Part shown: positions 25,362-63,352 of the stretch, piece after piece
How the letters are laid out: each line of letters begins with the position of its first letter
How positions within the stretch are numbered: the first letter of the stretch is position 1
Assembly (NCBI GenBank): GCA_020891255.1
Contig: BQFW01000002.1
Location: 992,001-1,056,000 of the forward strand
From: Entomortierella parvispora E1425
Taxonomy: Eukaryota; Fungi; Mortierellomycota
Length of the DNA stretch: 64,000 bases
Direction: 5' to 3'
Program-made: the position numbers and the translations under genes
Notes under the pieces: model-generated
Seen by the model: the letters and a program-made list of their open reading frames with translations, nothing else
What the model was told of the DNA's origin: nothing
Databases searched by the model: none

Positions 25362-27750
25362 ATGCGTTTCTTTTCTCAAACCAACAGTCTCCCGCGGCTG
25401 TCGAAGCTCTCGCTCGTGATCAGCCTCTCTGCCATAGCGGCCACGACCTCACTCGCTTTGCCTTCGAAGAGCGATGGTTGGCTGAACCTGACTGTTATCC
25501 ACACGAACGACGTGCACTCTAGAGTTGATCCTGCGAACGACTTTGGGGTCAGCTGCACTGCTCAAGATATTGAGCAGGGCCATTGCTATGGTGGAACTGC
25601 CCGCCACAAGACTGTGATCGACCGCTTGCGCCAGGCCAGCAAGAACTCTCTCCTTCTGGATGGAGGCGATGAGGTAAGCCACAAATGTTTTCCCCACTTT
25701 CTCTGAAGCAAAAAAAGAACTCAGCCTAACTCATTCCTCAATTGCCATTTTTCTAGTTCCAAGTAAGGACACGCATGCATGAATCTTTGGGAACGAGCAA
25801 ACGTGCAGGATCGGCGTGTGTCCATTCGCGATTGTTGTTTGTCTTAACGTCTAACGAACTGTGCAACCTTTTTCTTTCCGCGTAGGGCACCCTCTTTTAC
25901 ACATACTACAGGGTAAGACCCGCCCCAGAGAATTTCAAAGAAAAGCAAAAAAAAAAAGCCAACTTCAAACTAACGTATCTCCGTGTCCCTGATTCTGTGC
26001 CTGAATTCTCCTCTAGGGCAATGTTACGGCCCAAGTCATGAATGAGCTGGGATATGATGTCGGCACCATTGGTAACCACGAATGGGACAATGGCCCTGAA
26101 AACCTGGGTCGTTACTGGCCAAAACTCAAGTTCCCTATCGTTTGTGCGAATGTCGATTTTTCCAAGAACCCCGAACTGGGAAAGCTGGTCAAGCCTTACC
26201 ACATCTTTGAGGATCTGGGTGTTGGTGTCATCGGCTATATCACCAATGTAAGCGCGACAATCGACTCATCTCTTCAATGGATTGTCTTCTTTTTCCGTGG
26301 TTGACCTCTAGCTATTTTTTGTGCTTTAGACCACTGGTGATATCTCCAATGCGGGCCCCAGCGTCTCTTTCACGGATCCAATCCCTGCTGTTCAGAAATA
26401 TGTTGATGAGTTGGAGGCGAAGGGTATCAAACGCATTCTTGCAGTCTCCCACAATGGCTACGGACCAGATATGGAACTTGCTGCCAAGACCCATGGTGTC
26501 GATTTGATCGTCGGTGGCCACAGTCATTCCTACCTTGGTGACCCCAAGAATCCTCTCTACGAAGGACCTTATCCCACCATCATCCAGAATTTGAAGGGCG
26601 AGAATACCTTAATTGTGCAGGTAGGCGATGGTTGCTCAAAACACTGCTTTCTGCTAGCTGTAACTGCCCTGGGATTCTCACCGACTTGTTTTTTTAGGCT
26701 TTTTGTTGGGGTCGTTATATCGGTCATTTGGATGTCGTCTTCAATCCGGAGGGCAAGATTGTTCACTGGGAAGGCGCACCGATCCTTGTCGAGAACTCTA
26801 TCCCTGCCGATCCTAAACTTTTGAAGGAAATTGATGGCTGGAGACACGAGTTTGAGGAATGGGGTCAAACTGTGCTTGGAGTTGCCACAGAACCTTTCGA
26901 CCAAGCTACCTGTAAGCAAGGCGAATGCTCAATGGGAGACTTGGTTGCAGATGCCATGCTTGACATTGCCAGGACACCCATTCTCACGGCCCAGAACGGC
27001 GATGACACTGAGAGTAAAAGGCCATGGACTGATATTGCGTTCATCAACAGTGGCGGTATCCGTTCTGGATTGCCAGCAGGTAACATCACGATCGAGATGG
27101 TCATGACGACCTCGCCCTTCGGCAACGGACTCATTCAGACGCAGTTGACAGGCGTCGAGATCTTGAATATGCTGGAGGCTGTTTCTGCTGGACGATACAA
27201 GGATTCTCAAAAACAGGTCACCTCCAACATTCAGATCAGCGGGTTGCGTTATACCTATGATTCCTCTCGGCCTTTAACGGAAACACATCTAATTGAGGCT
27301 GAAATCCAGGACTACGATGGCACCTGGGCCGCGATCAAGCCAAGGCGGACTTATGGCGTCGTCACCCTGGATTTTATCATGACGGGAGGCGACAACATCT
27401 TGGAAAAGAAGTCAAGAAAGGAGATCAAGCTCGAGCTGTTGGACAAGGTCTTGATGGATTATATTGAAAACAGGGGCAGGATCACCCCATACAAAGACGG
27501 TCGTATCAAGGACATTGCTCCCAAGAGCCTCGATACTGAGACATTGGAGCCTCGCAGAAGTCCCTGGCGTATTGGAACTCCCGAGCACCTCAAGAGTCAG
27601 TACCCTGGAGGCATTGAGGAGATGTTGGCCCACTACCAGCGCTTAAGACAGGCAGGCGTGGGTTCTCGACAACAAAGTGCAGTGGAGACAGAGGTCTCCC
27701 TTGATGAGAGCTTTGAGCGCGATGAGCCTCAGCAGGACGTGATGGCCTAG
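25362..27750 (+). CDS. 5'-nucleotidase (UshA/CD73-type metallophosphoesterase) with signal peptide; exons 25362-25673, 25757-25762, 25886-25912, 26017-26247, 26330-26620, 26699-27750
   Basis: Motifs HTNDVHS, DGGDE|FQ|GTLFYTYYR|GN, GNHEWD, VSHNGY, GGHSH; C-terminal domain FINSGGIRSGLPAGNIT; hydrophobic N-terminus. Confidence 0.92.
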
Positions 27751-27833
27751 ACGCAGGTTGGCTACATTCTACCTCTTACACTTTACATCAGATAGCCACA
27801 TATATACCAGTTTTTGGCAGATAGTAGATTTTT

Positions 27834-29586
27834 TTATTTTTTTTGCAGTCTTGTAAAGAACGGCCCCAGCACTCTTGGGAGGGAATTAACCTCGTAGTCA
27901 GAGACAATGCTTGAAGTCGTTGATTCGAGGGTATTGCCTTCTTTCGCGCCATTGACAATATCGTCCACGCACATGTATTCATCGTCAGTCTCTGTCCGAT
28001 CAGTGTCACTGCCGTTGTTGTTGTCATTCGCTTTGTTATTGCTGTCGCCAAGGTTCTCGGGCGATGACGATGATGAGAGATCTGAGATCGTATAAACATT
28101 GCAGCGAGGGTCGCTCCATGGCTGTAAATTCTGCTTTGGCGTGAACTCATTGATATCAGATACTGCTATGCGTGTCGAAGGTGCTGTGTTGATCTGTGTC
28201 GAGGGTGCTGTGGAAGGCTGCGTAGGCATTTGTTTGGAGTTTGATACAGAGGAAAGTCCATGGGTATCCTGGACAAAGGCTGCTCCATCCGCCATTGAAG
28301 ATCCAGAGATTGTTGCTGCTACCAATGTCGCTGATGACGATGATGTCGATGGAGATCGTAGGGTACGCCTTTTCACTGTGGCTCTCTCGTGAAATAGCCT
28401 GTTGTGACCCTTCAGGCCCTTAGACGACCTCAAGATCATCCCACACTCCGCGATAGGGCACTCAATGGTCCCATGCAGTTCCCTTAAATGGGTTAGGTAA
28501 TGGTCCACAAGGTTCCGGGGGTTCCGAAATGCTGCGTGACACGTCGGGGTTATCACGTTTTTCCATAGACTTCCTTGTTGCTCTTCCTCTCTCTTGCGAA
28601 GATGTTGATGCCACTGACAGCAAGTGCCAGGCTCGAGGTCAATCTTTGGGCCTTTGCCTCCTGCCCTTTTGCGACTAAAGCCCCCCCTCATCCTTCGGCT
28701 TCCCCATCCTGACCTTTTGCGACTAAAGCCCTCCAGAACAACAGTCGATCTCCTAACATTGGTGTTGAGCAAACTCTCCTTGTGGTCCAACGCTACAACT
28801 TTCTCGGCCAACTTTGCATTCCTAGATTCGTTTGCATCTTTGGTGTCATCTTCTGTATCCGACAATACGATGATAACGGGTGGATGTCCAAGAGTTTTCG
28901 TTGCCGACTGCGGCGCTGGTTTGATTGGTATACGGTTGTTGATGGTGGAATCAAGTGACCTGGGTGTCCCCTGAAGTTCGCTCGTCTTGACCTTCTTCTG
29001 GGCAAGCTCTCCTAGATCGTTCCCAGGGATGGTGTGGTATTCTTTTGTTGTGGATTCCCCGCTGAGCCTCGGTCGTTTTTTAGCTCGATTTTCTCCATTG
29101 TTGTCCAATATTGACCCCGACCCTGAAATCTTCACACGGGCAGGCGTTGAGTTCGTCATTGACACTGCATCTCCTGAGGAGCTAGGTCGCGCTATTGAGT
29201 CGTGTATGGCTTCTGATGCTGGTCCAGGAACCTGAGGACCCCCTCTAGCTCTTTATCGGACAAAAGAGTCAATAAGTACGGGGCCTTCTCTCCATATTTT
29301 TTCCCTTCCTTTGGGAGGCGCAGACAGTAGTAACCAATCCTTACGTGTGATCGCTAAGATGAATTAAGAATAGCGCCCGAGTTGAAAACTGTAGTCTGCA
29401 TCCTTCCTTGTTGCATTTGAACGGCAGATTATTCATGAGAAATGGCCAAGCTGGGTTGAGTTTCGAGGAATGAATGCATGTCAAATGAGCAGCCTTTTCC
29501 CTGAAATGCAACACGTGATTTTGCCACCAATTTTTTTTTAGATGCGCAATCTTCGTGCAAGGTGCTATGGGACAGCGAGTGGACAA
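27834..29586 (-). CDS. C2H2 zinc-finger protein, Ser/Thr-rich; 5' end unresolved; intron 29344-29245
   Basis: Fingers CNKEGCRLQFSTRALFLIHLSDH (upstream exon), TCHAAFRNPRNLVDHYLTH and CPIAECGMILRSSKGLKGHNRLFH; phase-2 GTAAG...CTAG intron links the upstream exon to the 443-aa ORF in frame. True start codon not identified. Confidence 0.6.
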
Positions 29587-29894
29587 AAAAGAAAACCTCT
29601 TACCGCATTACCAGGATTCGTTGTTCCCGATCTTGAGAGAGAGATAGAGAGAGAGAAAAAACAAGGGGCAACTTCAAGGCGTTTCCGCAGGGAGGCTGTT
29701 TGTTTGCATAACCGTCGAATCGTTCTTCTAGATTTCCTGCCTGTGCCCGAGTCTTCTCTGTTCCAAGATGTCACATCATGTTAGTAAATACGTACCTGGA
29801 TGGGTGCCTGACACGAGCACCATCCCCGTCTTTGTAGCCAAAAGGACCCGTCAAGGACAACATCCACCATCTTTCTGAGGTAGTTGTTTTTTAC

Positions 29895-29928
<34 letters not shown>

Positions 29929-31151
29929 AATGGTGGCAAGCTGCATGGTTCCAACGTAAGTGGTCATTGTCGGGGCTCTATCTATTCTGACGTAAACCAA
30001 AGGCATCTCTGTTCGGTCCCTCGACGCCTTGGATGGGACATCATTGTTCACCGAGAGAACAGATTACCAAGGCCAGTCTATCGATAGGTTTCAATTGAAG
30101 CATGGTTGCATTTTTAGAGGACAGACAAAAGACGCGTCTCTGTTTTTTTGAGAGACAAATCAAAGACATTGACTCGATACTTGTATTGCCAGGATATCTG
30201 TATTGCCAGGCCGCATTGTGCGACCAAGGCCGTCGCCCCCACACCGGCTTCGAGGCTGTCACAAGCCCGTTTTGTTGATAGAATGCTGTCATATAGGGAG
30301 AGAGGAAGTGAGAGAGACCGTTCGCAAAAAAAATGCTCACAGCACCCAATGTAAAAAAAAAAAAAAAGTCCAGTCGCTCCTGACATCATGCATTGAGGGC
30401 GAGGGAGTTCACTCGGTTGAATGAAAGCAACAAAGGACCCACGGCCCGATCAACCCGCAGTGCGCAGGACATTAAAAGCCCTGCTCACGACCCTGTGATG
30501 TACATGATCGTGGATATGAACTATGTGTACGTGATATTGGTTGACATGAGGGGATACAGAGCAGACGAGAAAGGGAAATAACGGCAATGGGAAGGATAGC
30601 AATGGCGTTGCAGGACATCATAACAACCTGTGCACACCCTGTGAATGTAAGAGGGACAGGGTCAAAACCTGTTTGAAAGACAAGGCTTTTCATGCCCGGT
30701 CGCCGGAACATAGAGTTCAGAAAAGAGACTGGAACGGAGGTGTGGTTGTGCTCCATCATGGAAGATGATCCGAAAGAAGAAGGAGGCGCGCCGCTGCGCT
30801 TGCATGCACACTCAGTAAAGGATCGTCAACTAATGCAATCAAATTGATTTTTTCCAGACGAGACAAGAGGCTGGCTCTGAGGCCGATGGCCATGGACACT
30901 GCACCCGGAAACAGTAAAAAGACAAAAAAAAAAAAAAAATGTGAGGCGTATCCAATCGTTCCGTCTTTCTCTCTTCTTCCTCTCCTTCTCATCACCGTCA
31001 TTCTCAATCCACAATCCTTTCTTCTGTTCGCCTCTTCCCGACTCTACCTTCTTCTACTCTACTCCACCCAACTCTGCTCCCCACTGCTCTACACCATTCC
31101 TCTCTCACTGTTCCTGCAGATCGACTTTCGTTCGCAAATTATTCCTCCGCA

Positions 31152-33239
31152 ATGATCACCCCAACATCCTACACTAACACGACCGTATTCAACTCCAGTC
31201 CACCTGGCTATTGGGGTCATCCTACAGCATCAGGTATGCCAGAACATAAGTCTCATTCCCCGCGAGACCGAGAGAACTTGCAGCCCGTCTCACATCCGTT
31301 TTCTGACCATTTTTCTTTTCTTTGCTTTCGCTACTTCGCGCATTTTAGTTGGTAAGGCAATTTCTCTGCTCGTCGGTGCGCTCGGTCGCAATGCATTATG
31401 ATCAAGGGGGCAACATGGGACAGCATGGGACAAAGGGGAGGGTGGAGGGCAGGAAAGGACATCCTCATATGTTTGGCTTGTTGTGCACCGGGGACAATTT
31501 TTCTATCGAGTACAAGCTAAGGCTGAGGAAACCTCCGACCAATGCCATTCCATGACATGCGTTGGCTCTGACATTTGACATGCGACTCATTCAGGTTGTC
31601 AATGGAATCAGGGTCTGGACGTAAGCAGGAGCTGATTCTACTACAACGGCTTCGCACTGCAGGCCGACGGAGGAAGCGCAGCGATCTGGACCTAGAGACA
31701 ACAAAGCACCCATCTGTTTGGGGGGTATTTTTTTTGTTATCGCCGTCGATTCTGTCTGCAGGCTGGTTCTCCTACTTTTCTTTGCAGCGCAATTGGGATC
31801 AAACCCTCGTTGCTTGTGTTTACCGGCGTGTGTTTTGTCCGGTCAGGGTGCATGTGCGTGGACTGCACGGGTGCGGGTGTGTGCGTGGCACGGTGCAATG
31901 CGCGTGCAAAGAAACGCGAAGCTGTGCCATCCATTTTGCTTTCAGAGAGCTTTTTTTTTGGTCCAGGTAGCGTCCAAGAGTGTCTGTGGACATGGATCGG
32001 TGTGGAGCATGCTTTGTGTGTGTGGAGAAGGGTGCTCATGGGATGTGTGCGTGCTCGTCCACCGCCTTACCTGCCCCTCGCCCGGGGAATAAGGTGCGAG
32101 CGACCCATCACGCTTGATACCCACTGTGGATTCATCCTGCAACAACACCAAAAAAGACAGCTGGCTCTGGGGAACAAAATTGCTCTCGTGCCCGCCGACA
32201 CTTTCGTGCGACCAGTGGCTTCTTCTCTGGGTGGACTGTGCTCGTTCTTCTGACCTTGGTTGTGTGCTCTGATCCGCAGCATCCGCCCATCCTATTTTTC
32301 CTTGAACTTGAGCCACGTCAAGACAGGGGACAACCTGTGCTCTCACTTCGTTCACGATCCCCCCTCCCCCTCCCATTCCCCCCCCAACTTTTTGTTTGTT
32401 TGTTTGAATCAACAAACAGTATGACTGATCTAATGACTGATATCTTTTGTTTGTAATATCCTTTTGGAACCATAACCATAGACTGGTGCGAGAGTAACTA
32501 TGCTAAATCACACTACATTGCAGAGTTCTTCAACTCGCTGTCGTCTTTCTCCATGATCCTGGTTGGACTCGCGGGCATGTACCTCCACTGGTACTTCGAG
32601 AAGCGCTTCGTGCTGACGTTTGCCTCGATTGTTGTCGTCGGTATCGGCTCAATTGCATTCCACGGTACGCTGCTGTTTCCCCTTCAAATGCTGGACGAGG
32701 TCCCGATGGTGTACTCGTGCCTCACCCTGGTCTATTGCTGTGTCGAAAATCGACCCTATCGCCGGTATGGTCCTTGGTTCCCCATCGGCATCGCTCTCTA
32801 TGGTCTGTTGACGACCGTAGTCATGCTTTACGCTGGACCGAATAACCATCTACTCGAGTTTGTGGTTTTCCAGTCCTCATTTGCGTTCGTGGTCCTGGTG
32901 CTCTTGTCCCACATTATCAAGATCTATGGTAGTCTCCACGATGATTCGATCAAGCGCATGTGGACGTTTACAGGAGCTATGGCCGCAGTGGGATACGGAT
33001 ACTGGAACATCGACTTTAGAATGTGCTCCCTTATGCAAAATTTGCCATTTGGCCTCTGGAACCCTCAGTTCCATGCTTGGTGGCACGCTCTGGCCTCGAC
33101 GAGCTCCTATATGGTCTGTATGTTGGTCTGCTACAACCGCGCAGAGAACTTGGACCGCAAGCCTCAAATCAAATGGAAAGCAGGCGTCCTCCCTTACGTC
33201 GTTGCTCAAGAGCTCCGAAGCAAACCAAAGTCTTGCTAA
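31152..33239 (+). CDS. ACER3: Alkaline ceramidase (ACER3/YPC1-like, CREST superfamily); exons 31152-31233, 31349-31351, 32482-33239
   Basis: Spliced GYWGHPTASVDWCESNY...YIAEFFNSLSS; GSIAFHGTL, QMLDEVPM, HAWWH; 843 nt = 280 aa + stop. Confidence 0.92.
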
Positions 33240-33408
33240 AGTCCAAAATGACGCCAACGGCTTGGTCTACCTGGTCATAATATAGCCTGTAGCCCCTCTC
33301 TCTCAAATGACTCCTCCCCCACCCCTTTCGAACTTGGCTAATGTAGATTATTATATTGTACAGTGGATGCAGAGATTGGATATGGGACAAGAGAAAAGGG
33401 GTGATAAT

Positions 33409-35265
33409 CTATGGGTTGGTTGTCATGGATGCTGCAGCTGAAGGTGAAGAGTTTAGGATAGAAACGCCTGCAGACGTCGCAGAGGGAGAAGCGGTCATAA
33501 TCTCACGAGAGCCACTACTGTTTCGTTGATGATGTCCAGATTCTTTGCTGCCACTTGACCGTCCACCTGATTTGCTGCCATTGCTGCGATGATGACGCTC
33601 ATGACGCTCATGCCGTTCCTGATGATGGTGGTGGTGATTATGGGATCTGAGAGTTGACGACGTCGAGTCTGCAATGGAAGCATCCGTTTGTTCCTGGTCA
33701 ATCTCCTTCTCCAATTCTTCCAGTTGACCAAGAACGAGACCCACGAGGTGATCTTGGCGATCAACATCCCAGTTGGCTCGCTCTAATTCGAATCGAGCCT
33801 TCCGCCGAGCCTCCATCAATCGATCCTCTTCTAGCCTCAGCTTTTTGGTATCATCCCGATGCCTCTGGATGTCTAGTTCCAATTCTGGCGCCCAAGAGAG
33901 TTTTGTGACATCGACCACGGCATTCATGATTTGCTGCTGCTGTTGCTGTAAAAGTTGCTGCGGCGCCAGCTGTGCAGATGAGCCTTGACCCGATGATCCA
34001 AGGGCGGCTCCTCCTGGTCCATGGTAGGAAGACATAGATGAGGATGGTCCTGACCCCTGTGCTCCTCTGTAAGGACTGGATGCGTAGCCGTTGGGACCTC
34101 CGTTCGTAAGGGCTCCAAGATTCGATGAGGAGTGGGATGTGGTGAGGGCAGGCATGGGTCCAGACGTTGGGATGTTGGACGGAAGAGCTGCCTTCGCATA
34201 GGGACCGCCACCGCTGCCGAGAGGGCCTCCATTTCTGACTGGTAGCATATCCCTATCTCCTCTTTCTCTCTCCCGTTCCCGTTCTCGCTCTCGTTCTCGT
34301 TCTCGCATTTCACGGTCTCGTTCACGGTCCCGCAGCTCTCTTTCTCGCTCACGCTCGATGCGTTCTCTGTCTCTGTCTCTATCGCGTAGCTCCCTTTCCC
34401 GCATCATTCGGTCGCGATCCCGTTCCCGTTCACGCTCTCGTTCACGTATCTCACGTTCTCTTTCCCTGTCTCTGTCTCTAGTATCGATTTCGTACTCTGG
34501 GATCTGCCCCGGCTCTGGTAGAGGTGACGAAGGGTTCTGGGTCCCTTGTGGGGAAGATGCTGATCCTTCTATTGATGATGCTGTTGCTGGGTTGGCAGTA
34601 GTCGTTGATGTCAATGCTGCTGACGCCGCTGGTGCCTTTGAAGGTGAAGTTCCCCTTGATCTTGCCGCTGCGGGTCCTGCAGAGACTACAGATGGCAGCT
34701 GAGGAGGGATAGGTCTCCGAGCTGGGGGTGGGGGTGGGTGTGCATGAGGAAGGCGAAGCTGATTGTGGGGGGAGGGCGACTGATATGAAGACGACGATCC
34801 ATAGTGTGACGGAGGGTATCGAGAAGGCGGTGGCCCGCCAACATGTCCAAGAGGGCCTGGAGAGGCTGCACTGGCATGCCTGGATCGTGGCGGTGGAGGC
34901 GAGGGTCGATAGGGATGATAGTCGCTTCCTCCACGTCCATAGTAATCTCTATCGCTGCCTCTGTAATAAGGATGGTGGTCCCGACTGCTTGAACCATAGT
35001 AAGGAGGGGAGCGATGAGATGCACCTCCTCCACCGCCGCCACCGCCTCCACCGCTCCTGTAATGTGAATCGCGATGATAATCAGTCGGAGGAAGACCATA
35101 GCCAGATTCGCCCAAGGGAGAGCGGGATCGGGGTCGGCCGCCATTTCCACCGAGTGGGCCACCGCTGGGTCCTGCAGGTCCTGCAGGCTCTGAGTAACGT
35201 TCTGAGGATGAGCCACGACGGGGCTCTGGTACTGACCGCGAGGAGTAGGGTCCGTGTCGATCCAT
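33409..35265 (-). CDS. Intronless 618-aa low-complexity protein (Pro/Ser/Tyr-rich N-terminus, RE/RD dipeptide block, coiled-coil), function unknown
   Basis: Long ATG-initiated ORF; RDRDREREREIRERERER block; predicted helical segment ELELDIQRHRDDTKKLRLEEDRLMEARRKARFELERANW. Confidence 0.8.
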   Translation of the reverse strand: MDRHGPYSSRSVPEPRRGSSSERYSEPAGPAGPSGGPLGGNGGRPRSRSPLGESGYGLPPTDYHRDSHYRSGGGGGGGGGGASHRSPPYYGSSSRDHHPYYRGSDRDYYGRGGSDYHPYRPSPPPPRSRHASAASPGPLGHVGGPPPSRYPPSHYGSSSSYQSPSPHNQLRLPHAHPPPPPARRPIPPQLPSVVSAGPAAARSRGTSPSKAPAASAALTSTTTANPATASSIEGSASSPQGTQNPSSPLPEPGQIPEYEIDTRDRDREREREIRERERERERDRDRMMRERELRDRDRDRERIERERERELRDRERDREMRERERERERERERERGDRDMLPVRNGGPLGSGGGPYAKAALPSNIPTSGPMPALTTSHSSSNLGALTNGGPNGYASSPYRGAQGSGPSSSMSSYHGPGGAALGSSGQGSSAQLAPQQLLQQQQQQIMNAVVDVTKLSWAPELELDIQRHRDDTKKLRLEEDRLMEARRKARFELERANWDVDRQDHLVGLVLGQLEELEKEIDQEQTDASIADSTSSTLRSHNHHHHHQERHERHERHHRSNGSKSGGRSSGSKESGHHQRNSSGSREIMTASPSATSAGVSILNSSPSAAASMTTNP

Positions 35266-35370
35266 GATGTGAGGATGGAGGATAAGTGCAATGAATGCCT
35301 TTGGTGGCCTTTTTTTTTTTTTTTGGGAAACGGCGAGAACGTGCTAATTCTACGACGATATCACGTTCCG

Positions 35371-35393
35371 TGACGTCATGATTTTGTCACGTG
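35371..35393. promoter_or_regulatory. CRE palindrome (TGACGTCA, 35371-35378) and E-box (CACGTG, 35388-35393) in a divergent promoter
   Basis: Motif match only, about 110 nt upstream of ATG 35265. Confidence 0.25.
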
Positions 35394-35918
35394 GCTCTAG
35401 GTCGGCATTTTTGGCTGCACGTTGCGCACCCTTGCATGGAAAGGCCTGTTGTCGTTGCAAGGGGCAAGTAACTCACCAAGACCGACAATGTCGTTACAAT
35501 AGCCATCAACAGTTCTAAGCCCGTTGATTTGCTCCCCATCTCCAGGACCACCTTGGCGCGCTCTACGGAGTGATATTCAGAAAGGGCGGGAGCCATGTGT
35601 TGAACATGTGCGTGTGCGTGAGAAAGAGAAGAGAAAAAGAGAAGTGGGGTATGGGGGTTGGGAGAGCGAGAGACGAGAGAGAGACAGAGAGAGAGCGAGA
35701 GAGAGGGAAACAGAGAGAGAGAGAGAGAAGGAAGGAAGGACAAAGGGAGCCCAGATATTGCAATTGCTTGCTTGTCCTCGCGCTGGCAAGATCAAAAAAA
35801 AAAAAAAAAAAAAAAAAAAAACGCATGGGATCCGCGAAGGGCGGACCACACCTAGGCACTGTCGAACGGCTCTTTCCTCATCATCTGTCCTTGTCCTTCA
35901 TCCTTCGCATTCTTCTCA

Positions 35919-35951
35919 TTCTTCTTCTTCTTCTTCTTCTTCTTCTTCTTC
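35919..35951. repeat. (TTC)11 microsatellite upstream of the TBC gene
   Basis: Read directly. Confidence 0.9.
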
Positions 35952-50541: not shown

Positions 50542-53500
50542 TCACAGGGTAGCCTCCTCACGCTGTCGTCTTTGTTGTTGAAGACAGTCTTGGATGGGAT
50601 CAAAACGATATGTGGTGGGGGTCGCTGGGGTCGATTGAGGGGAAGGAGGGGTCATGGTCATTTCAGTGTCATCGTCCCCAGAAGTCGTCATGATCGATTC
50701 CATCGGTCGACTGGAGGGGACCGTAGAAGTTGATGATCCAACAAGCATGGGAGATGTTAACCTATCCATGGAGTGGCTCGTGTGCAAGGTTTTGTGGGAT
50801 CCAGTAGACTGTGCGCCACCATGGCCATTGCTGGCGCCATGCTGGAATGGCTGATGCAAGTGCCGGGAAGATGAAACCGTTGAAGCGGAAAGAGATCGAT
50901 GTGGAGAAGAACCAGGGTTGTTCATCCACATCAACGATCGATCGCCGTGAGAAGACTGCAAGTCACCATGACCGGAATGGCGGTATGAGGGCGCGTGCTG
51001 TGGATATGAATAGGCATGGGGATGCAATTCCGTAGCAGCCGCTGACGATGGAGACGTCGATGAGGGTGAGGACAACAAAGACGACACCGAGAACGCAGCA
51101 CCATTGCCGCCACCATTCCTGGAAGAGGATGGAGAGGAAGGAGTCGCGGTGGCTAAGTATCTTGGTGCAGAACTTTCACGACTGTGCTCGTGAGAGGAAG
51201 ACGACGACGCATGATAGTGCGCGGCCGCTGCAGCTGCGTGTTGCTGTTGCCTCTGCTGTTGCTTTTGAGCCAAACGCTGCTGATATTGCTGTTGGTATTG
51301 CTGTTGATACTGCTGTTGTTGCTGGTAGTAAAACAATTGTTGCTCTCGAGACGAAGACGGTGATGCTGTCGTTGAAGAGGCTGCCGTAGTTGTTGTATTG
51401 GTCGAGCTCGCAGAGTTGGAGGAGGGCGCTGCCTGTGCCATTGCTGGGTGGGCCTCCCTGTGGTCGTCCGTTCGACGATGGGCCCGAGGCGAGGTAGGTG
51501 AGCCAGGCGCAGACCAAGAGGAGGGGGCCTGTTGTTGACTATCATCCTGTTCACGCCTGGGCTCGTGATCCTGGGTATCTTCCTCTTCCTCTTCCTCCTC
51601 TCCTTCATCATCATCATCATGATCCTCATCGCCGTCCTCGCGGCGACTGGACTTGGGGAAAGCAGACAGAGAGGTCGAGGATGCACTGGGATCTTGAGGC
51701 GGGGACATATCCCCGTGTGGAGTACCCGTGCCAGAGCCACTACCTCCGATCTGCTGAGCAGAGGTTTGTGGGCTTCCCTCAGTCTCCCCTCCATTGCCAT
51801 CCATGTCCTCGTCCTCGTCTCCATCTGCACGCTTGCCATTTGCACCACGACGGGACTTTGGTGAGATATGAGTCCGATAATGTTGCATCATATTGTCCTG
51901 TCGCGAGAACTTGCTTCGACAACCGGGCTTCAGGCATGCAAAGTTACGTTCGCCAGTGTGGATCCTGTTATGACGCGCTAGATGGCCACTATTTTTTTTT
52001 TGTTTGTTTGTTTCGGATGAGAAAAGAGAGTACATGACCATGTGAGTGCATTGTCCTGAACACAAAGGAAAAAAATCCACGGGGACGCTGTGTGTCATCT
52101 TTTTTGCCTTTTTTTTTTTTACCTTGTCGTGAATCGTTTGTTGCATCCAGGGTGAGTACAAGAGTACTTTCGCTTGGAAAGGCCCGCCCCCATTAGCATC
52201 ATGCCGTCTGGCATCATCCCGGGATGGTGTGCAACCATTCCGCCGGGTCCTGCTGACATGCCGCCACTGCCGCGATAAGGGTCCTGGTCTTCTAGTCCAA
52301 TATCTTCAGAGCTGGCTCTCATAAAATATGGCACAGGTGTAGGGTATTGACTGGATCCAGAGGGTGTACGACTTGGTCCTTGGTATTGAGGAAGAGGAGG
52401 GTGCTGAGAATAGTGGCCGTGGTAATGATGGCTATGATGCCCATAGCCGTGTCCGTGTCCATGCCCATCTCCATATCCATAGGCGTAGAGCTGCGCTCCG
52501 CTGCTTAGACTGCGACTCCTTTGCGAATTGGCAACAGAGCGGGGGTCAATAGTCGCACCACCAGCCCCTGCCCCTCCTTGGGTATCAAACACTGGCCGAA
52601 TAGGTGTGGCTGCATTCGTAAGCGAGACTGACCGTCCGGTGGCTTCGTAACTCTCCGATCGATGTCTGTGAGACTTGTACATGGGCGACGACGGCGAATA
52701 GTACGGTGGATCTCGACGATGATGGTGATGATGATGATGATGGTCTTCTGAGAAGTAATCTCGGTAATGACCACTAAGTCGATCCCCGCGTCCGTGGGGA
52801 GATCTCGGGGATCTGGGAGACCTCATCGGTGGCAGTCCACTCCGATCTGTTGCGTAAGCTGCTGAATTGGACGACATCACAGGGATCGCAGGCATGGGAG
52901 GTGTTGGTGGTGGAGGTGGTAAGGAAAGGGGGATCGCTGGGAGGGCTAAAGGAGGTGCAAGGGGTCGCTGTTGTTGGGATTCTTGTTGTCGGTATTCCTC
53001 CTGCCGCTGTTGCTGCTGCTGTTGTTGTTGATGATGATGATGATCTTGATCTGAGTGACGGTGAAGATACTCGTTCCTGATCGATGCCCGTTCGGGATCA
53101 AGAGGAGCCAATTCGTTCAAGATGCTGACCTTTGTTCCTGAAGAGTTGGTGATTGACAATCCAGCGAGCCGCCTGGATTGCTGGTGAAGGGCTGAATCAG
53201 TGGCGGTCATAGCAGAGTGGATTGACTCGGGGCCAGAACTGACACTAGTATTTGTCATATGGGACGCCGCGGTTCTCCTCCGGGGAGAGATCGGTTCCTG
53301 GTGGTGATGAAAAAAGGGCTGTGAGGATAGTGTAGGAGATGAGGCCGAAGAAGGAACAAGTGCGGGAGGCGTGCGAGGTCGAGAATGAGGAGGTCGTGCA
53401 GAAATGGGCTTGAGTGAGAGATTCAGGTCTAGACTGGGAGGGGGCTCCTTCTTGAGAATAGATCGACGATGGGTCGTTGGAGATGCAGGCGTGATTGGTG

Positions 53501-53642
53501 AGGCTGGAGAAGGCTGAGCGTTGGTGGTACTGCTGTTATACTGATGGGGTACTGGAGAGGGGGGTTGGTCGGAGGCGCTCAATGTATTGTAGTGGGAGTG
53601 ATCGAACCGAGGTGGATACCTTGAGGCAGCAGTGATGGACAT
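50542..53642 (-). CDS. NRG1: Nrg1-like C2H2 zinc-finger transcriptional repressor; intron 52122-51989
   Basis: Spliced KYSCTHPGCNKRFTT|SGHLARHNRIHTGERNFACLKPGCRSKFSRQDNMMQHYRTH closely matches the Nrg1/Nrg2 double finger (FTTSGHLARHNRIHTGE...FSR.DN..QHYRTH). Confidence 0.85.
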
Positions 53643-53770
53643 GGCTCGGAAAAGAGAAGAAAGAAAAAGAGGAGGAAAAGAAGAGAGGGGGAAGAAAAGT
53701 GGGAATGGTGGGTAATAGGTGTCGGTATTTAAGCAATGCAGTGGGATGTTCCGACCGTCAGAGCGAGCCT

Positions 53771-53806
53771 GGTGGTGGTGGTGGTGGTGGTGGTGGTGGT
53801 GGTGGT
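53771..53806. repeat. (GGT)12 microsatellite upstream of the NRG1-like ATG
   Basis: Read directly. Confidence 0.9.
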
Positions 53807-56800
53807 GGAGGAGTGGTTTGTTAGTGAGGTGGGAGCATCGAGGGGGAGAGGACGAGGGCACGACGCGCGTGTGCTCATTCAATGGGATGCAGAGGGATGT
53901 TTGTTAATTAAAAATAACAATGAACCACAGGGCAAGAAAAAAAAGATTCAGGGCCAAGACGCCAGCGAGGTCTTTGGCTGGTACGAGAACGTGTTGATGA
54001 AGGGTTTGTTGACTGTTTGTGTCTCTCTGTGTGTGTCTGCGAGGGTGTGGTGCCTTGAGAGCACTCTTCGCTGCTTCTGGACAAGGATAAGGGAGGCCAC
54101 GAAGGACAGCCAGTAAAGGAGATATGAACGAAAAAGCTTTTGCTTAAATTAAAACAAAAAAATCCGGGGGTGTTGCGACCATTGACCCTTAGTGGCGACT
54201 GAAATGATGAAAACTCGATGACAAAAGGGGTGGTAGCACGATGCAAGGAGAAAGGTCGACAAGGCAGGACGCTAGGAGGGGGCGCAAAGGAGAGGAAAAA
54301 GGTGATGGGGAAGGGGTGGTACTGTGAGATCAGGACGACCAAGGATTTCAAGAAGAAACCCAATATGAATAGAAGGACCGATGAAGAATGACGCGCCTCG
54401 AACCTCAGGATGGTACGATAGGATCGGGGGAGGGGGGGGGGATGGCGCCGTTAAGAAGGAGATCAGAGGCAGCCAAAAGTTGATTCCAGGTAGGCAGGTA
54501 GTAGGCACCAGTAGCTTTTGTTGCGAAAATCAGATCCGTCCTCTTCTTACGGTACGATAAAGGATGGGTTGACAACAAGGGCGTGTCAATACGTGTTAAT
54601 CCGGATGAATGGTCCTCGGTGGAGATCGCTCGTAATTGCAGAACGTTTCGATTCTGTTGAGCTCTGTCTGGTGTAATGAGTCTGTGCGGACTACGTTTCT
54701 GCAGTAACCTAGAAAGGCATGAGTGAAATAGATCACAGTTAGGAATGAGCTGCATGCAGAAATTGCAAAGGCTTGATCCTGGGCGCGTTGCGTGCGTCTT
54801 CTTTAGGAGTCCGAGATGATCAGGAACCAAGGCAATCCTTCATTTTTTTTTTGATAAAGCACCCCCCAAGTACGGTCTTGACTCTTTCCCCCCAATTCAC
54901 AGATGATGATGACACGAATGGCGCACGAGGGCAGGGTGAAAAGGGAACCAAACCCAGGAGGACGCCAAACGTCCTGATGACCAGAATCTAAATGACTATT
55001 GATCCCTCCATCCACCCCTCGCCCCTCGCATGCGCTCTCCTTCCAACGCGTGGTGACAATGTGCTCTGCACCCTGATTGCAGCTCAAGGCCACTGTCTTC
55101 TCCCTGCTCAAGGACAGAATGTCATGGTGGGATTCCAAAAATACAAAATAACGGTTGCATCACTTGTTGTCACGACCAACATAAACAAAGACGCAGAAAG
55201 AAAGGGACAGGAGCAAAGGGAATGTCGAGGTCCCTCGAAGAGTTTTCCATCGTTGGGAGATCTTTTCAGCACGAAAAAAACGTGGTTTATCAAGGAGAAG
55301 GGCGTCCCTTGCGGTCACGGAGAGAACAGCATTTTTTCCTTGGGCAAAAAGGAAAAATACCAACACCAGCAGCATCCCTTTCAAAGATGAGATTGCGCTA
55401 AATAGAAAAAGGAACCCGAAGACTAAAAGGGGGAGTCGCTGCAGAAAGGTGGGGAACGCAAAGCCAACAGAGAGCCACTGCTCAGGTGTTCAGGACACAC
55501 TGGAAGATGCCACATCCAAGCACAATCGCAATGCCTCAATGCCACCGAGTGCGCTCTCGGTTGAACCGCCCAAACACAGTTCTCAATTCAAAACACAAAT
55601 TGTGGAAGAACACCCCAGAACTCAAGAATTGGGGGAGGGGGAGAGGCGGGCGCGGGGAGACAAAGAAAACTGATAGGGTCATTTGTTTGTGAGCCATTCA
55701 GCCATTGACGATGCAGTGCAACAGAAGGAGAGTAAAGAAAAGAAAAAGTGAGCAGTAGGAGGCAAAAGGACGCGGAGAAATGATGTGTTTCTTCAAATAA
55801 GTGGGGGACTGGCATGAGCAGTGCAACAGACACAGAGAGAGACAAATGGGACACCCAAGCTCAAACAAATCAACTCTCTCAGAGAGTGCGAACAAAAAGT
55901 ACCGGAGAGGATGCCGTGAGAGCCTCCCGGTGAGGATGAGGTGGAGGGACACTGGGGGGACATGGGTACAAAGAGACCACGGGGTCAGCCAGGCGACAAT
56001 AACAAAGAATGTCAATTGAAAAGGCGAGGGAAGCTGTTGACTCTGTTGCCACGCGCTTCATCTGTGGAACGCAAAAACATCCAACGGACAAATGTGCACA
56101 GAGGACAAAAAAGAAACACTGATGGGAGAGACAAACGCAGGGACAGACGCAAGGGACAAAACGAGGGGGACCAAGGGGAGGACAAAGGGGGCACTGCTCC
56201 TAGAGCTAGGGCTTCAAGGAAACAACAATGTGGTGTGGTGCGGACTAGACGTGAAGTATGGTGCCATGGTCCACACTTGACGGCGAGCGTGTGTTTGTGC
56301 GCGTGTTGCATGAAATAACATCATGCGCAACCCTTGACAATGGCACAGACCTGCCGCGTCCGTATTGCCAGCAAAAGCAGGGCGCCTCTCCCTCTCTTTT
56401 TTTTTTTTTTTGCTTGCACTCTGGAACAAAAAAAAAAAAAAAGGAAGCGAATCGCTCCTTCGATTGAGTGATTGTGCGAGAGAGGCCAAGCGAAAGCGAG
56501 AGATGGATAAAGAAAGAAGAGAAGGAGAGGGACAGGAACAAACATAGTGACGGAGTGGGCTGAATGGATGGCTGGAATTGAAATCACGTTGCGCGCCTTT
56601 GATGTCCGAGGAAGGCTGAAAACAGGCGTTCCCTTTTCCCTCTCTCTTTCTGTCTTCCAGAGTCATTTGAACCCAATGGCTGAAAAAAAAAAAAAAAAAA
56701 AAAAAAGGAACCCAACTGAGATGGAAAGAAGAGACGCCAGATTCCGAGTATCGAGGGCTTGCTCGGTGCAAAGAGAGAAACAAAGAGTGCTCACAACCCA

Positions 56801-59800
56801 AACTGAACTGAATAATCATTTTTGGCTGAAGGACCGATTCCTGTTCACTGGCCCTGAATCGAACAGGGGTCCTGTTTCCTGACTGTCGAGCGGGTTGACA
56901 AGAGAGCGGAACTGAGGGGTTCTGAGAGAATCACTTACCAGTTGTCCCAGTTACAAGATTAAGGTAGAGGGAAGTTCTATTCCACTGGACCAAGGACAAC
57001 AGTGGTGGAATGCGTAGTGTGGTTCTGCGGGAGAGGGAGAGCGAACAAGAGAGCGATGGCTGACGGAGAATATCACCGACAGGTGAGTTGCAAGAGGGGG
57101 GAGCTGGAGGGAAGATTGACAATGGAGGGGGGAGGAAGAGAAAACGGAGACAAGCTGAGAGTAACACGGTGATTTTGTTTGTTGGTCGTGTTCAGTTGAA
57201 GCTGCTACTGGCAAGGTTTGTTGATGTTGGCAAACAGTGGATGCTGCAGACGCTGTCAGATGGTAGATGGTCGATATGAAATGATACGATATGAATGAGG
57301 GTGGCGATTGCAAAGAGGACAAAGAGGATAACGAAGAGGAAGAGAGAAGGAAAATTTAAAATTTGCGCACCACCAGCGTGGAGATGGAAGGTACAAATGA
57401 TGAGCAGGCGGAGGGCGAGGGGGACCGAAGACGGGAAGGAGTTGAGCGAGGGAACTGGATATGAACAGATGCGCAGAGACAGAGACGTTGTGGAAAGTAC
57501 AGTACAGTGCAAAGCGGAGAAGGGAAAGAGGGTCCGTCTGCAGTGGGGCATGCCGCGTCCTTTTATATGTTCCTTGGATGGGTGTCTGTGGTGTCTGTGT
57601 GCTCAGCGTCAGAGCACCGCGGACCGAACGGTGCCTTGTTCTCTTTCTCTCTTTCTCTCTTTCTCTCTTTCTCTCTTTCTCTCTCTTTCTCGTCTTGTTC
57701 TCGAGGCTCTTCTCTCGTCCTCTTCTTCGTCTTCCTTCAGCTCCGAGGGGATCCATCCTCCTCTCGCTCATCCTATCGATCGTCTACTTTCTTTGTCTCA
57801 CCCATCCTCCCTGCCCACAAACTCCCCCAGGGACAAGACCGAGGGAAAAGGTTCAAGTTGGAGCTACTGAATAAGGTAGGTACACCATCATCATTGTTTT
57901 GGTTCTTGCCCTGTTCGCTCGGTCTGCCTGTACCCTGTAACAAACCACTCAGCTCAGCTCATTATTGAAACTGTTCCCTGCAGATGTCTATTCAATTCAT
58001 TCTTTACATCCTTGCTCCACATGGCAGTGAGCACCCAACGTTGCTTTCTTTTGGTTTTCCTTTATTTTGGTTTTTCCTTTCCTTGTGCTTTGTTTGTCTT
58101 CGCCTGTTTTTTTTTGATGGTCCGTCAGTGCTCCCCTCCCGCCCGTCTGTGTGCGCTGGTCAAAACGCCAGATTCACATCCAGCTCGACAATTTTATTTT
58201 ACTTTTTCATTACTCTGCTCTCATCTGCCCTCCTCTCCCTTTACACTCGTCCTTTTGACCTTTTTTTTTAGACTTCAATCCTTTCATTGGAGCCAAGCTG
58301 GTACTCTTTACAGATCGATCTGTGTCGCCTCGATGACCCTGGCGGACAGGGATGCGATGGGCTGTACTAATCTCAGGAAACGACAGTCAACTCAGACGAC
58401 GTCTTCGTATTGCACTTGTACATGTCATTGGCAACAGCAAAGAACAACACAATCGATACCGTCTGGTCGGATTTTCCTTTGGGCCAACGGAATAGACTGC
58501 GGGGGCTGAAGAGAAGGAAGGTTGGAGAGAAGGATCAGGAAGAGTGCAAGAGCCCCGAGAGAAACATGGGCTAAAAGGAGACAAGGAATGCATGACGAGT
58601 ATAGACATACACTAGCAGACAGGCGATTTCTTCTGCGACGGGCAGTCTGGCTGGTTCCAAATGAAAGCATCCGATGATAGGCACGTTCCTCTTCAAACGG
58701 GCGTCTGAATCGGATTGGGGAGGGGGACCGGTGAGCCCATGCAGGTCAAGGGTATCCTCATACGAGCAGCTCTGCAGGGGATCGCCACAAGAGTGTATTT
58801 CTCTGGAAGAACAGAGCAGTGGAGCAACGGCGCTGTATAACCGGTTATTTGACAGTAGAGACCGTTAGCCCGCTTGACTCGGCTCCATCCGCTGTTTCAC
58901 GGACGTTGGGACCGTGTGAACTTGACGATCATTGGCCAAGAAGTAACGCGTCGCCTAAAAGTCAGGGTCGGGGTCGGAGGCACAAAAAAAAGAAGGGGCA
59001 ACGTACCTTGGAGCGAAAGTGAGTGTTTCCTACATGGTTCATGGACCAGAGCAAAGTCTCAATGGAATGGATGGAAAATACAACGCGTGTACACCCTAGG
59101 GATATACATGCAAAGAGAAGAGGGTATGCATGGAGCCACAGAGACACAAAGATACAAAATAAAGAGAAAAAATGGAGCAGTTGGAGTACATAGTGCCCGT
59201 CTCCAGTCAGGGTGCAGTGCCTGAACCCTTCAAGGGTCCTGCTAGGCAAAGATGACAAGAGAACGTCTGTCATTTGCACGGACCCTTATAGCACTGATGC
59301 TTTGGAATTGCACTGACAAAAGAAAGTTGACAGTTGGAAAGGCAGGACGAACCATTGACCTTCTTCCTCGAGCAGAACAGTACATTGTAATGTACATGAA
59401 TATGCACCACCAACAGAGACACAGTTGTACATGTTTTCTTTTTTGTTGTTTTGACCCGGTCGATGCAAAACAAAGTGGAGACCAAAAAAAAAAAAAGGAA
59501 AAAGAAAACTAACAAAAGAATGCTCTCCAGGGATGGACCTGGCACTTCCAAACTGGACAATCACGCACCTTTTGGGAATTTACAGCGCAGGAAGTACCTT
59601 TCAACAGTTCAATGCATCATACTGGCAGTTCTTTTTTTTTTCTTTTTTCCTTTTTTTTTTTTTTTTAACGCAACGGCAATTGGGAAAGGGTGCAGGTCCA
59701 TTATGGACCCCATCGAGTACGCCCGGCATCTGCTGGGAGTGGATCGAGTGATTTTCCCAGAATGTGCTGCTCACAAACCCAACCCGACTCTATTCTTCTG

Positions 59801-60562
59801 TTGGCTGCACCTGCAGGCAATAACGATGCACCCACTTGCACGGGCTCAAGCGATGGAGGCTTGTCCGTTGCATTTGTGTAAACTTTTTGATTTTCCAAAG
59901 GGCATTCACAAGGCACCAAATGGACTTTGGATAAGCGCAGATCAGGCATCAGAAAGCACCAGCGAATGGTTGTTGCTGCAGGAAATATAAGAAAGAACGA
60001 TCCTCCCTCTCTCCAGATGACCAAACCTAGGGATTTTTTTTCCCCGGCAAGGACTGATGAGAACTCTTTTCCCTGTTGTCGCATGCTCGCGAAGCGCCGC
60101 ACATCCTTGTGGCGCAGGACATTGTTGCGTCCACGTTTTCAGGTTTTGGCTTTTCTTTCCACTGCACGCGTTGAGAAGAACAAAGGCCCAGTTAAGAAGT
60201 GACCATCGACCAAACAGAGACCACCAGGGAAGGCGTGGCACGCCCGCGGACAAACAGGTCAACTAACCACTGTCGGATTGAAAGCAACGTGCTTGTGTGC
60301 CCCCTACCAACAAGAAGAACAAACAACAATAGCAATAGCAACAACAACCCTACCAGAGAGCAAAATGACAGCCGCAGTGAGCAACAGGCATGCCATGACT
60401 GAATTACAATCTTGGCCAAACATTCACCCCAACCAACAACAAAAAAAAATGTTGGCAACCGGGCGCCCGCAATAGGATCTCAACATATCAAAAGGTTAAA
60501 AAAAATAAACAAACACCAGTAATGAATTAGAGAGCGCTTCCTTCTCCTTCTCCTCCTCCTTT

Positions 60563-60661
60563 TCCTCCTCCTCCTCCTCCTCCTCCTCCTCCTCCTCCTC
60601 CTCCTCCTCCTCCTCCTCCTCCTCCTCCTCCTCCTCCTCCTCCTCCTCCTCCTCCTCCTCC
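60563..60661. repeat. Perfect (TCC)33 microsatellite
   Basis: Read directly; produces spurious poly-Glu/poly-Arg ORFs. Confidence 0.95.
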
Positions 60662-61719
60662 TTACAATGCCAAATCGGTGAAAGAACAGCACCTTGCAGG
60701 CCCGGACAACGAAACAAGAAGGAATATGAAAGGGCAAGCCGGTCATAGGCACGCGTGTGCTACCTCGGCCTATATCGCTCACCAGTCTAAACGTCTTTAT
60801 ATTTTTTCTTACATGCGGGGGATGAGCAGATTGAGTATCCGGGTAGGATACCCTCTTGCCACTGATAATAATCTACCCCAAAGATCTGAGCGCGATTGTA
60901 GGAGACAAGAAAAGATGGATATCTCTATCGCAATCTTTCAGAAAAACAATGATTCTCGAGAGAACGAGCGATCGCCCATGGTATGGCGTGCTTGACGCGA
61001 TGAAAGATTGCACTCTTTGTCCCTTGATGCAATATGTTAGAAGTCAAGGAACGCGTTTTTTTTTTGGCAAGAGGCGAAGATACTCTTCTCCTTCATTTCA
61101 CAACTGGTGTGGTGATTTGCGTGCTTGGTGCCTTTGTTGGTACTGTACACAACTCCGGCCCTATCATCACTTTTATACCGCGGCAATACAACATCAACAA
61201 ACAATTCTCCTGGCAGTTAAGGAGTTGCGTCAACGGATCGGCGGTTGGAAATGGCCCACTCTTTGTTTTTATTCGCTGTTATTTGCAATGAGATCTGCCG
61301 ACCACAACAGACCAGGACATTATATTCTCCCGCATTGTCAAGGTCAAGGGCCTTGGCGATTGTCCATCGGGGAGCGAAATGGTCAGGGTCATTTCAGGTC
61401 CAGGGCGAGGATAGGATTCAGGGTCTGGGTTGATGTTACTCTTACGAAAGAGAAAAAAACCCGTGTTCGCTCCTTTTATCACGTCAAATCAAACCAATAT
61501 TTTCTTGCCCTCACCATCCGCCCTCCACACTACACAATCGATCGCTAGGAGGCGAGTTCATCCGACGAGAACATTTCTTAGTTTTCTTTTCTCTGCTGAA
61601 ATGGCCTGTGTTATTTTCAATGTGCTCAGCGTTTGTGTTTTGAACCTCGCCCAGCTGCTCCAGAATAATGGAAAAGAGGGGTCCAGTCCAGTCACCATCT
61701 TTTAGCCCCATTATTCTAT

Positions 61720-62308
61720 CCCCCAACGCAAAGCCCAAACTTGCAGCATTCAGTTCGAATCAACGCTGAGTAAGGAAACAAACCACTGCCTATTCGTCGC
61801 CTTATCGAGATCTGCGCAGAGAACGAAAGCACTTACAGATGATGCGCCAGCCATGGTCAGCGCCTATGACCACGCCTTGGAGTCTCAGTCAGGTCGGATG
61901 ATACCATGACGCTGGGCGTAAGGGACAGCCCGAACTACAGTCCTTTGAGTCAAACACTCACTGACATGACGATGACTTCTAAATAGCGCACAAAAGAGCC
62001 TCTCTCTTCGATAGATTCCCACGGGTGATCCCCTGATGGCGCCATTCCAGTAGTGCCCTGTGCTAATGCACAGAATTGGGGAAGGGTCCTTCACTTTTTT
62101 TGCTCCTGAACTGTGTGCAACTCTAAGTGGATGCAGGCTGGCTTTCAATGTTTTGGCGGACCCATTCACTCTCTGGTCGCGGTTGTGGTACATGTACCTA
62201 TCGTACATGCTCATATAGTACCTCCTCAGATATATAATCCCAACCGGACAAACCGGTACCGTTGAGACATCCAACAACGTACTGTAGTGATTCAACATGT
62301 CGGTTCAT
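61720..62308 (-). other. Possible small spliced gene divergent from FHIT (unresolved)
   Basis: ATG 62308, donor GTACGT 62282, acceptor near 62198, donor GTGAGT near 61952, a 27-nt exon flanked by CATAG and GTAAGT (about 61863-61837); no homology recognised. Confidence 0.25.
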
Positions 62309-62445
62309 ATCTGGACAAAGACCTCTGCACAACTGATACGCGGATTTTTTTGGTGGCGAAACGTGACTGCTGGATACATCGACCCTCCAGGGCATGTGCC
62401 AATGCATTCTTTGTTCATTCATACCTGACGACACAATCATTCGCC

Positions 62446-63352
62446 ATGCCGGCAAGCAGTTTTTACAAGTTTGGACCACACTCAATCTCTGCGGGACAGG
62501 TCTTCATGAAGACGACCCACTGCCTGGGACTCGTCAATCTCAAACCTATTCTTCCGTAAGAACACGAGATACGCAGATGCAGGGAGGCGGCGATGCTATG
62601 ATTTGACAAAAAGCTGACTCTTTTTCCTTTTGTTTTTTTTCTTTGTTCCAGCGGTCGTAAGGGATAAGAACCACACTGATAAGCATGTGCAGTTTTTTTT
62701 ATCGTTGGCAGAAAGCTAACGGACTCTACCTTGGATGTACTCCTGTATGTTAGACGTACTTGTAATCAGTCGACGTAATGTTCCACGATTTCTTGATCTG
62801 AGTCCTGAGGAGGTACATTTCTGCATTGTTTTATCATGCGTCCTCTCGGCATGTCGGACGGAAACACATTCGTTCTCAGCTGCAGCAACACTAACAATGC
62901 ACTCTCTATTCCACGCCTGCTGTTAGGTCACTGACATGTTTCAATCAGCGCAACGAGTTGGAAAGATCATTGAAAAGGAATACGGGGCAACGTCTTTAAC
63001 GATTGCGTGCCAGGATGGACCAGCAGGTAGTCGGCCCCCCTCGTTGTTCAACAACATTTTCAGCAAAAAAATTGAATTAACGCCCACGTTGCCCCGTTGC
63101 TTTGATGACTTAGCTGGACAAACTGTGCCTCATTGCCATGTCCATGTTATCCCTCGACGACTGGGCGATTTTGAAAACAATGACGATATTTATGACGAGA
63201 TTGCCCGTAGCACTGCCGAGCTCTTGACAAATGATGATGCCATAGCGGCTGCTGGTGCCGCCAAGCATGGCGTCGATTTTGAGGAACGGGCACCGCGGAC
63301 AGAGGAAGAAATGGCTAAAGAGGCAGCCCGACTTGAATCTCTCCTTGCTTGA
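62446..63352 (+). CDS. FHIT: Bis(5'-adenosyl)-triphosphatase FHIT/Hnt2 (HIT family); exons 62446-62555, 62652-62656, 62754-62812, 62927-63026, 63114-63352
   Basis: YKFGPH, LVNLKPILP|G|HVLVISRR, IACQDGPA|AGQTVPHCHVHVIPR, ENNDDIYDE, PRTEEEMAKEA. Confidence 0.93.

Follow-up and report, generated by a model that had tools for sequence, protein, structure and literature searches.

Coding micro-exons of 15 nucleotides (nt) or less are conserved in land plants, where they lie within protein domains, are widely mis-annotated, and can be followed back to the emergence of a major clade (Yu et al. 2022, PMC8831610). The donors used by the smallest of them tend to be strong (for example GTRAGT at the 1-nt exon of VPS55), and the same work stresses that flanking introns can be detained (PMC8831610). 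Among fungi, a long-read annotation of Coprinopsis cinerea lists 1,165 gene models (about 9%) that contain an internal exon no longer than 15 nt, and 89 that contain one no longer than 3 nt (PMC12230235), while Xlr2 of Trichoderma virens provides a fungal micro-exon with a functional consequence, an alternative switch regulated by glucose (PMC11121469). Here, we describe three coding micro-exons of 6, 3 and 5 nt, located respectively in a 5'-nucleotidase, an alkaline ceramidase and a Fhit-type HIT hydrolase gene, within a stretch of 64,000 nt of Entomortierella parvispora E1425 (contig BQFW01000002.1; hereafter the window, to which all coordinates refer, plus strand unless stated otherwise).

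These micro-exons resemble those of land plants in their canonical flanking introns, their location in conserved domains and their omission from gene models; they differ in belonging to another kingdom and to other genes, the plant set being supported by RNA-seq and the present one by comparative DNA and homology (PMC8831610). The likeness to Coprinopsis cinerea concerns an intron-rich genome in which omission breaks gene models, at a density to which three micro-exons per 64 kb is comparable, but that species belongs to the Basidiomycota, and its annotation paper does not report deep conservation of single micro-exons between phyla (PMC12230235). The Xlr2 switch is regulated, whereas nothing in the three present micro-exons shows regulation (PMC11121469). 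A literature search for micro-exons in Mortierella found no paper. A preliminary description of the window, made without database searches, had called such exons poorly described in early-diverging fungi, which is true of the Mortierellomycota but not of fungi in general, considering Coprinopsis (PMC12230235). Micro-exons at a similar density are on record for Coprinopsis and plants. What is useful here is how deeply they are conserved in Mucoromycota and how often they are mis-annotated.

The preliminary description had placed the three micro-exons where they are listed below, and direct reading finds each of them exactly there, between canonical GT-AG introns. Each is bounded by two complete introns, with a donor, a branch point, a pyrimidine tract and an AG, followed by a second GT donor. 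Protein, domain and structure searches were made exon by exon for all three genes.

The 6-nt micro-exon belongs to a 5'-nucleotidase of the CD73/UshA type (Pfam 5_nucleotid_C, PF02872, at 6e-33; a Metallophos match, PF00149, on one exon falls below the cut-off as the piece is short), with the following structure:
25362..25673, plus strand: exon 1, 104 codons ending in ...LLLDGGDE, phase 0
25674..25756, plus strand: 83-nt intron, donor GTAAGC, CTAAC at 25726, T-rich TAG acceptor
25757..25762, plus strand: 6-nt micro-exon TTCCAA, encoding Phe-Gln, supported by the gap in the CD73 alignment and by orthologues
25763..25885, plus strand: 123-nt intron, donor GTAAGG at 25763
25886..25912, plus strand: 27-nt mini-exon encoding GTLFYTYYR, whose spacing matches CD73 residues 86-94
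26017-26247, 26330-26620 and 26698-27750 (including the stop), plus strand: remaining exons, supported by Pfam and by PDB alignment

Exon 1 aligns to CD73 and to venom 5'-nucleotidases as far as the GDQ motif, at residue 83 of structure 4h1y, and the alignment of the fourth exon begins at residue 95 of human CD73 (4h1y). Between the exons, 11 residues of CD73 (84-94) are left unaligned, which is exactly Phe-Gln plus the nine-codon exon, and CD73 reads YQ-GTIWFTVYK there. TTCCAA restores the Phe-Gln of the GD-E-FQ-G motif (metallophosphoesterase motif II). The sites of the 83-nt intron score 8.5 (D1) and 12.8 (A1), within the normal range of the genome. Micro-exon and donor read TTTCAG+GTACGA in M. 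antarctica, TTCCAA+GTACGT in a further Mortierella assembly, and TTCCAA+GTAAGA in M. alpina. In one Mortierella relative, the 27-nt exon is fused to the next exon and the intervening intron is absent. The same genome also harbors a 5'-nucleotidase paralogue (C8:1771471-1771900) with Phe-Gln fused to exon 1 and no first intron; this copy carries an in-frame stop and a Val replacing the metal-binding Asp (GGVEFQ), and is probably a pseudogene.

The 3-nt micro-exon lies in an alkaline ceramidase of the ACER3/Ypc1 type (Pfam Ceramidase, PF05875, at 8e-54) with an N-terminal DWCE motif:
31152..31233, plus strand: exon 1, 27 codons and 1 nt ending in ...GYWGHPTAS, phase 1, with the same N-terminus in orthologues
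31234..31348, plus strand: 115-nt intron, donor GTATGC, CTGAC at 31303, TAG acceptor
31349..31351, plus strand: 3-nt micro-exon TTG, in which G+TT gives Val and the last G opens the Asp codon of DWCE
31352..32481, plus strand: 1130-nt intron, donor GTAAGG at 31352
32482..33239, plus strand: last exon, from (D)WCESNY... to the stop, beginning AC-TGG-TGC-GAG, supported by Pfam and the ACER3 structure

The last exon aligns to the ACER3 structure 6g7o at 1e-26, starting from W20, and a direct join of exon 1 to it would be in frame, minus one residue. That residue is a Val, Ile or Leu immediately before D-WCE in 80 of the 102 homologues with a homologous N-terminus (Val in 52, Ile in 24, Leu in 4). 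The remaining 22 are all gene models of Mortierellaceae (18) or Glomeromycotina (4), so that a hydrophobic residue of this kind precedes DWCE in 80/80 correctly modelled homologues. Two paralogues of the same genome (C8:2621308 and C4:2779600) are intronless at the micro-exon site and read contiguously ...TASVDWCE and ...TASIDWCE. The first exon of the C8 copy is 100% identical to a deposited dihydroceramidase of Entomortierella parvispora. Among Mortierellaceae orthologues, micro-exon and donor read TTG+GTAAGA in Gryganskiella cystojenkinii, TCG+GTAAGA in Gamsiella multidivaricata and TTG+GTAAGT in Mortierella sp. GBAus27b; Gigaspora rosea has TTG+GTAAGT, where A+TT followed by G reads Ile-Asp. 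In the window, YAG-TYG-GTAAG is present a single time, the expectation being 0.05. The downstream intron (1130 nt) is about ten times the usual length; its counterpart measures 462-1331 nt in Mortierellaceae relatives and 95 nt in Gigaspora. This intron has no Rfam match, and a BLASTN comparison with the relatives detected no conserved sequence in it.

The 5-nt micro-exon belongs to a Fhit-type HIT hydrolase gene, whose homologues carry the name bis(5'-adenosyl)-triphosphatase:
62446..62555, plus strand: exon 1, 36 codons and 2 nt, ending in ...LVNLKPIL plus CC, phase 2
62556..62651, plus strand: 96-nt intron, donor GTAAGA, CTGAC at 62614, long T tract, CAG acceptor
62652..62656, plus strand: 5-nt micro-exon CGGTC, giving CC+C GGT C+AC, Pro-Gly-His
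62657..62753, plus strand: 97-nt intron, donor GTAAGG at 62657
62754-62812, 62927-63026 and 63114-63352 (including the stop), plus strand: exons 3-5, exon 3 opening AC-GTA-CTT

Exon 1 aligns to residues 3-31 of human Fhit (E 0.02), and exon 5 encodes the histidine triad HCHVHVIP, with a HIT domain match on that exon alone of 0.003, below the cut-off. The junction CC+CGGTC+AC reads Pro-Gly-His-Val-Leu, and the frame breaks without the 5 nt. Orthologues have TGGTC+GTAAGT (Linnemannia zychae), TGGAC+GTAAGT (M. alpina and Ambispora gerdemannii) and, in the mucoralean Thamnidium elegans, TGGCC+GTATCC; these variants differ solely at third codon positions. In Linnemannia zychae, the intron that precedes the micro-exon has GTAAGG as its donor, the micro-exon's own donor being GTAAGT, another sign that the hexamer does not go with the micro-exon.

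Taken together, the orthologue comparison covers the DNA of 11 loci (4 ceramidase, 4 Fhit and 3 5'-nucleotidase; the closest relative was left out of the last set, as its contig begins inside the gene). The cross-clade mapping proposed in the preliminary description, carried out on these loci, finds the micro-exon at an unchanged position and in an unchanged phase in 11/11. The loci span three subphyla: Mortierellomycotina, Glomeromycotina and, for Fhit alone, Mucorales. All differences within the micro-exons are synonymous (TTG/TCG; CGGTC/TGGTC/TGGAC/TGGCC; TTCCAA/TTTCAG), while the flanking introns cannot be aligned by BLASTN even to those of the closest relative, whose exons are about 80% identical in DNA. 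Because these short islands are kept with synonymous changes in unalignable introns, and because paralogues encode the same residues contiguously, the comparison indicates that the three micro-exons are genuine, old and kept by purifying selection. They go back at least to the split between Mortierellomycotina and Glomeromycotina, that is, hundreds of millions of years, and the Fhit micro-exon is also older than the split from Mucorales. The fit of frame and residues to homologues, together with the 11 loci, bears out the earlier proposal that they are coding exons completing conserved motifs. That each completes such a motif is true of all three but partly an ascertainment effect, since a reader working without tools can spot micro-exons just where a conserved motif is visibly broken. 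The case provides a concrete and checkable example of ultra-short exons in early-diverging fungi that are ancient.

The reading we favor, to which we attach a probability of roughly 85%, is that of three ordinary, constitutively needed coding micro-exons from an intron-rich Mucoromycota ancestor, surrounded by introns of the normal short type, and sharing the donor GTAAGG by coincidence. Their T-rich YAG acceptors, CTRAC branch points and upstream introns of 83-115 nt, presented in the preliminary description as common features, are indeed present, but these are ordinary features of introns in this genome, since callable introns are typically about 75-165 nt long, their branch points reading CTRAC and their YAG acceptors being rich in T. 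Splice-site scores of the micro-exons likewise fall inside the normal range of the genome, with the exception of the weaker D2 and A2 of Fhit. This fungus most likely uses intron definition, and not exon definition. Under intron definition, an exon of 3-6 nt would be no obstacle, provided that the introns on both sides are each complete with donor, branch point and acceptor. When U1 binds the donor downstream of such an exon, it would also cover part of the 3' splice site upstream, and because of this footprint the two introns are most likely removed in turn, the micro-exon being first fused to one neighboring exon. The residues that the micro-exons encode are strongly selected (Phe-Gln in the 5'-nucleotidase, a hydrophobic residue and the first Asp base before WCE in the ceramidase, Pro-Gly-His35 in Fhit). 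These residues presumably adjoin metal or nucleotide ligands: in 5'-nucleotidases the bridging Asp of GD, in ACER3 the Asp19 that binds Ca, and in Fhit His35. As for the donors, no core is commoner in this genome than GTAAG, and the base that follows it is free to vary.

Several points weigh against this reading. Three GTAAGG donors out of three would have a probability of about 1e-3 if the hexamer had been specified beforehand. The 6-nt and 3-nt exons are symmetric, so that skipping would keep the frame, and their constitutive inclusion is suggested by conservation alone. The order of intron removal is purely a matter of inference. The background set of introns is heuristic, comprising about 130 sites called on sequence from 274 kb, and the micro-exons themselves are supported by comparison of DNA and homology.

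The claim that gene predictors miss such exons is confirmed by faulty models in all three families. Among the public ceramidase models, 22 skip the 3-nt exon and three include it (Gamsiella, Mortierella GBAus27b and Gigaspora rosea). Mortierellaceae Fhit models were sought in the 43-136 amino acid range, outside which full-length models would fall, and those found in it are N-terminally truncated, with 75-135 amino acids against about 170 expected. Public 5'-nucleotidase models variously lack Phe-Gln, the 27-nt exon, or both, and several keep Phe-Gln yet skip the 27-nt exon. Public protein sets of these fungi are systematically wrong at such sites, either because residues adjacent to the active site are deleted or because the proteins are truncated, and this affects function prediction, structure modelling and phylogenomics using these proteins. 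The case argues for micro-exon-aware annotation of Mucoromycota.

To what extent does this genome use micro-exons beyond the three genes considered? The earlier suggestion of a high density in the lineage stands in part. A search for three consecutive YAG-NNN-GTAAG units with a spacing of 60-140 nt gives 84 matches, against 3 in a reversed control, and reveals arrays of 3-nt exons on contigs C1, C3, C5, C8, C11 and C13:
C1:2289076-2289861 and C1:2309642-2311359: 3-nt-exon arrays
C3:299401-301560: 3-nt-exon array
C5:206688-207704: 3-nt-exon array
C8:3059016-3061778: 3-nt-exon array
C11:1529686-1531143: 3-nt-exon array
C13:1844067-1848577: 3-nt-exon array

Two of these loci are chains of ten 3-nt exons parted by introns of about 105-115 nt. 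The arrays share with the three window micro-exons the YAG-NNN-GTAAG architecture and the intron length, but they are repeated, lineage-specific and mainly use GTAAGT donors, whereas the micro-exons of the window are single, ancient and located in housekeeping enzymes. On the other side, a scan of 274 kb based on splice signals only found no further convincing micro-exon, the known sites ranking top; the sensitivity of such a scan is low, since each of the three known micro-exons has either a short exon as its neighbor or a long intron. It is conceivable, and we put it forward tentatively, that Mucoromycota retain a sizeable ancestral set of exons of 6 nt or less, which this genome handles routinely, both singly and in tandem arrays. 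If so, many deposited Mortierellomycota and Glomeromycotina proteins would carry small errors in conserved motifs, and the positions of micro-exons could serve as deep phylogenetic markers, as in plants.

Does the hexamer shared by the three donors nevertheless point to a special splicing context? The preliminary description had suggested that the lineage favors GTAAGG, in which G at position +6 would aid the recognition of ultra-short exons, and the contrast between 3/3 donors in the window and about 10% in the background is what speaks for it. The background was drawn from 274 kb of one contig, made up of the window and a further 210 kb. Ordinary introns had to have flanks open for coding and, 50-170 nt after the donor, a good combination of branch point and acceptor, a filter passed by 3% of the raw occurrences of decoy motifs. 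It comprises 131 consensus-type donors, including 17 GTAAGT, 17 GTAAGA, 17 GTAAGC and 13 GTAAGG, so that GTAAGG is a normal minor-to-common donor; a stricter and smaller intron set has one GTAAGG among 22 GTAAGN. Position +6 after GTAAG is thus essentially free in this genome. Moreover, the 5' end of the U1 small nuclear RNA is canonical (AUACUUACCUG), and a G at +6 therefore gains no pairing. None of the 11 orthologous micro-exon donors is GTAAGG (five GTAAGT, three GTAAGA, and one each of GTACGA, GTACGT and GTATCC), and the closest relative has GTAAGA. In the arrays, the +6 base of the first donor is T in 53, A in 20, G in 8 and C in 3 cases, and two arrays that were read have GTAAGT at 18/24 donors and GTAAGG at none. 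The 274-kb signal scan places GTAAGG next to a candidate micro-exon only where one was already known. The enrichment is therefore seen at the three window cases only, the sample of dispersed micro-exons being too small for a formal test. Any hexamer would be shared by three donors with a probability of about 1%, and a common +6 base, given three GTAAG cores, with one of about 6%; as the feature was picked post hoc among many, the sharing of GTAAGG does not convincingly exceed chance. A favored GTAAGG context is thus very improbable, and a special donor signal, which would have been mechanistically new, does not hold up. What may remain is a plausible lean of micro-exon donors toward the GTAAG core (3/3 in the window, 8/11 in orthologues and 21/24 in the two arrays, versus 64/131 ordinary introns), in counts that are not independent owing to shared ancestry and duplicated introns.

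A different possibility, compatible with ordinary micro-exons, is that the symmetric 3-nt and 6-nt exons are regulated alternative exons, whose skipping would tune or inactivate the enzyme. Skipping would be frame-neutral in both genes, the intron downstream of the ceramidase micro-exon is unusually long, and Trichoderma Xlr2 offers a precedent for a regulated fungal micro-exon (PMC11121469). Against this, the residues are invariant in homologues (80/80 for Val, Ile or Leu; FQ or YQ in CD73-type enzymes) and adjoin metal-binding residues, so that skipped forms are predicted to be inactive, and the splice sites are of normal strength; regulation of this type seems unlikely. Least probable of all, and refuted by the conservation, is that the segments match the motifs by chance and are parts of single longer introns, the proteins of this lineage simply being without the residues, even though many deposited gene models are built in that way. 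The Fhit frame cannot close without the 5 nt, the ceramidase pattern is expected only 0.05 times per window, islands with synonymous changes only are kept in the unalignable introns of 11 loci, and the intronless paralogues encode the residue.

Codon bias in the 274-kb set is weak, at about 0.1 bit per codon, which makes de novo intron calling difficult. Calling by codon bias and open flanks was dropped after the first iterations of the position weight matrix drifted into coding sequence, and its place was taken by two sets, one of clean short introns and one relaxed and controlled by decoys. As raw strings on both strands, GTAAGG occurs at 37 sites in the window against 16.6 expected from shuffles, a density 2.6 times that of the adjacent 210 kb (5.8 versus 2.2 per 10 kb), and the other GTAAGN hexamers show no such excess. 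This raw excess was discarded as support for the donor idea, most sites being without a usable downstream acceptor and at least one being antisense in a coding exon. Four further micro-exon candidates that were read in sequence were also not retained: one in an actin-capping-protein gene belongs to a true exon of about 135 nt, a CAT candidate in the adjacent block is doubtful, and another at window positions 23220-23229 is a normal exon start. The fourth, in an MFS-type transporter, turned out to be a 39-nt mini-exon (VSHLYLTQGILYG; window positions 6093-6131, minus strand), with introns of ordinary size and a GTAAGT donor.

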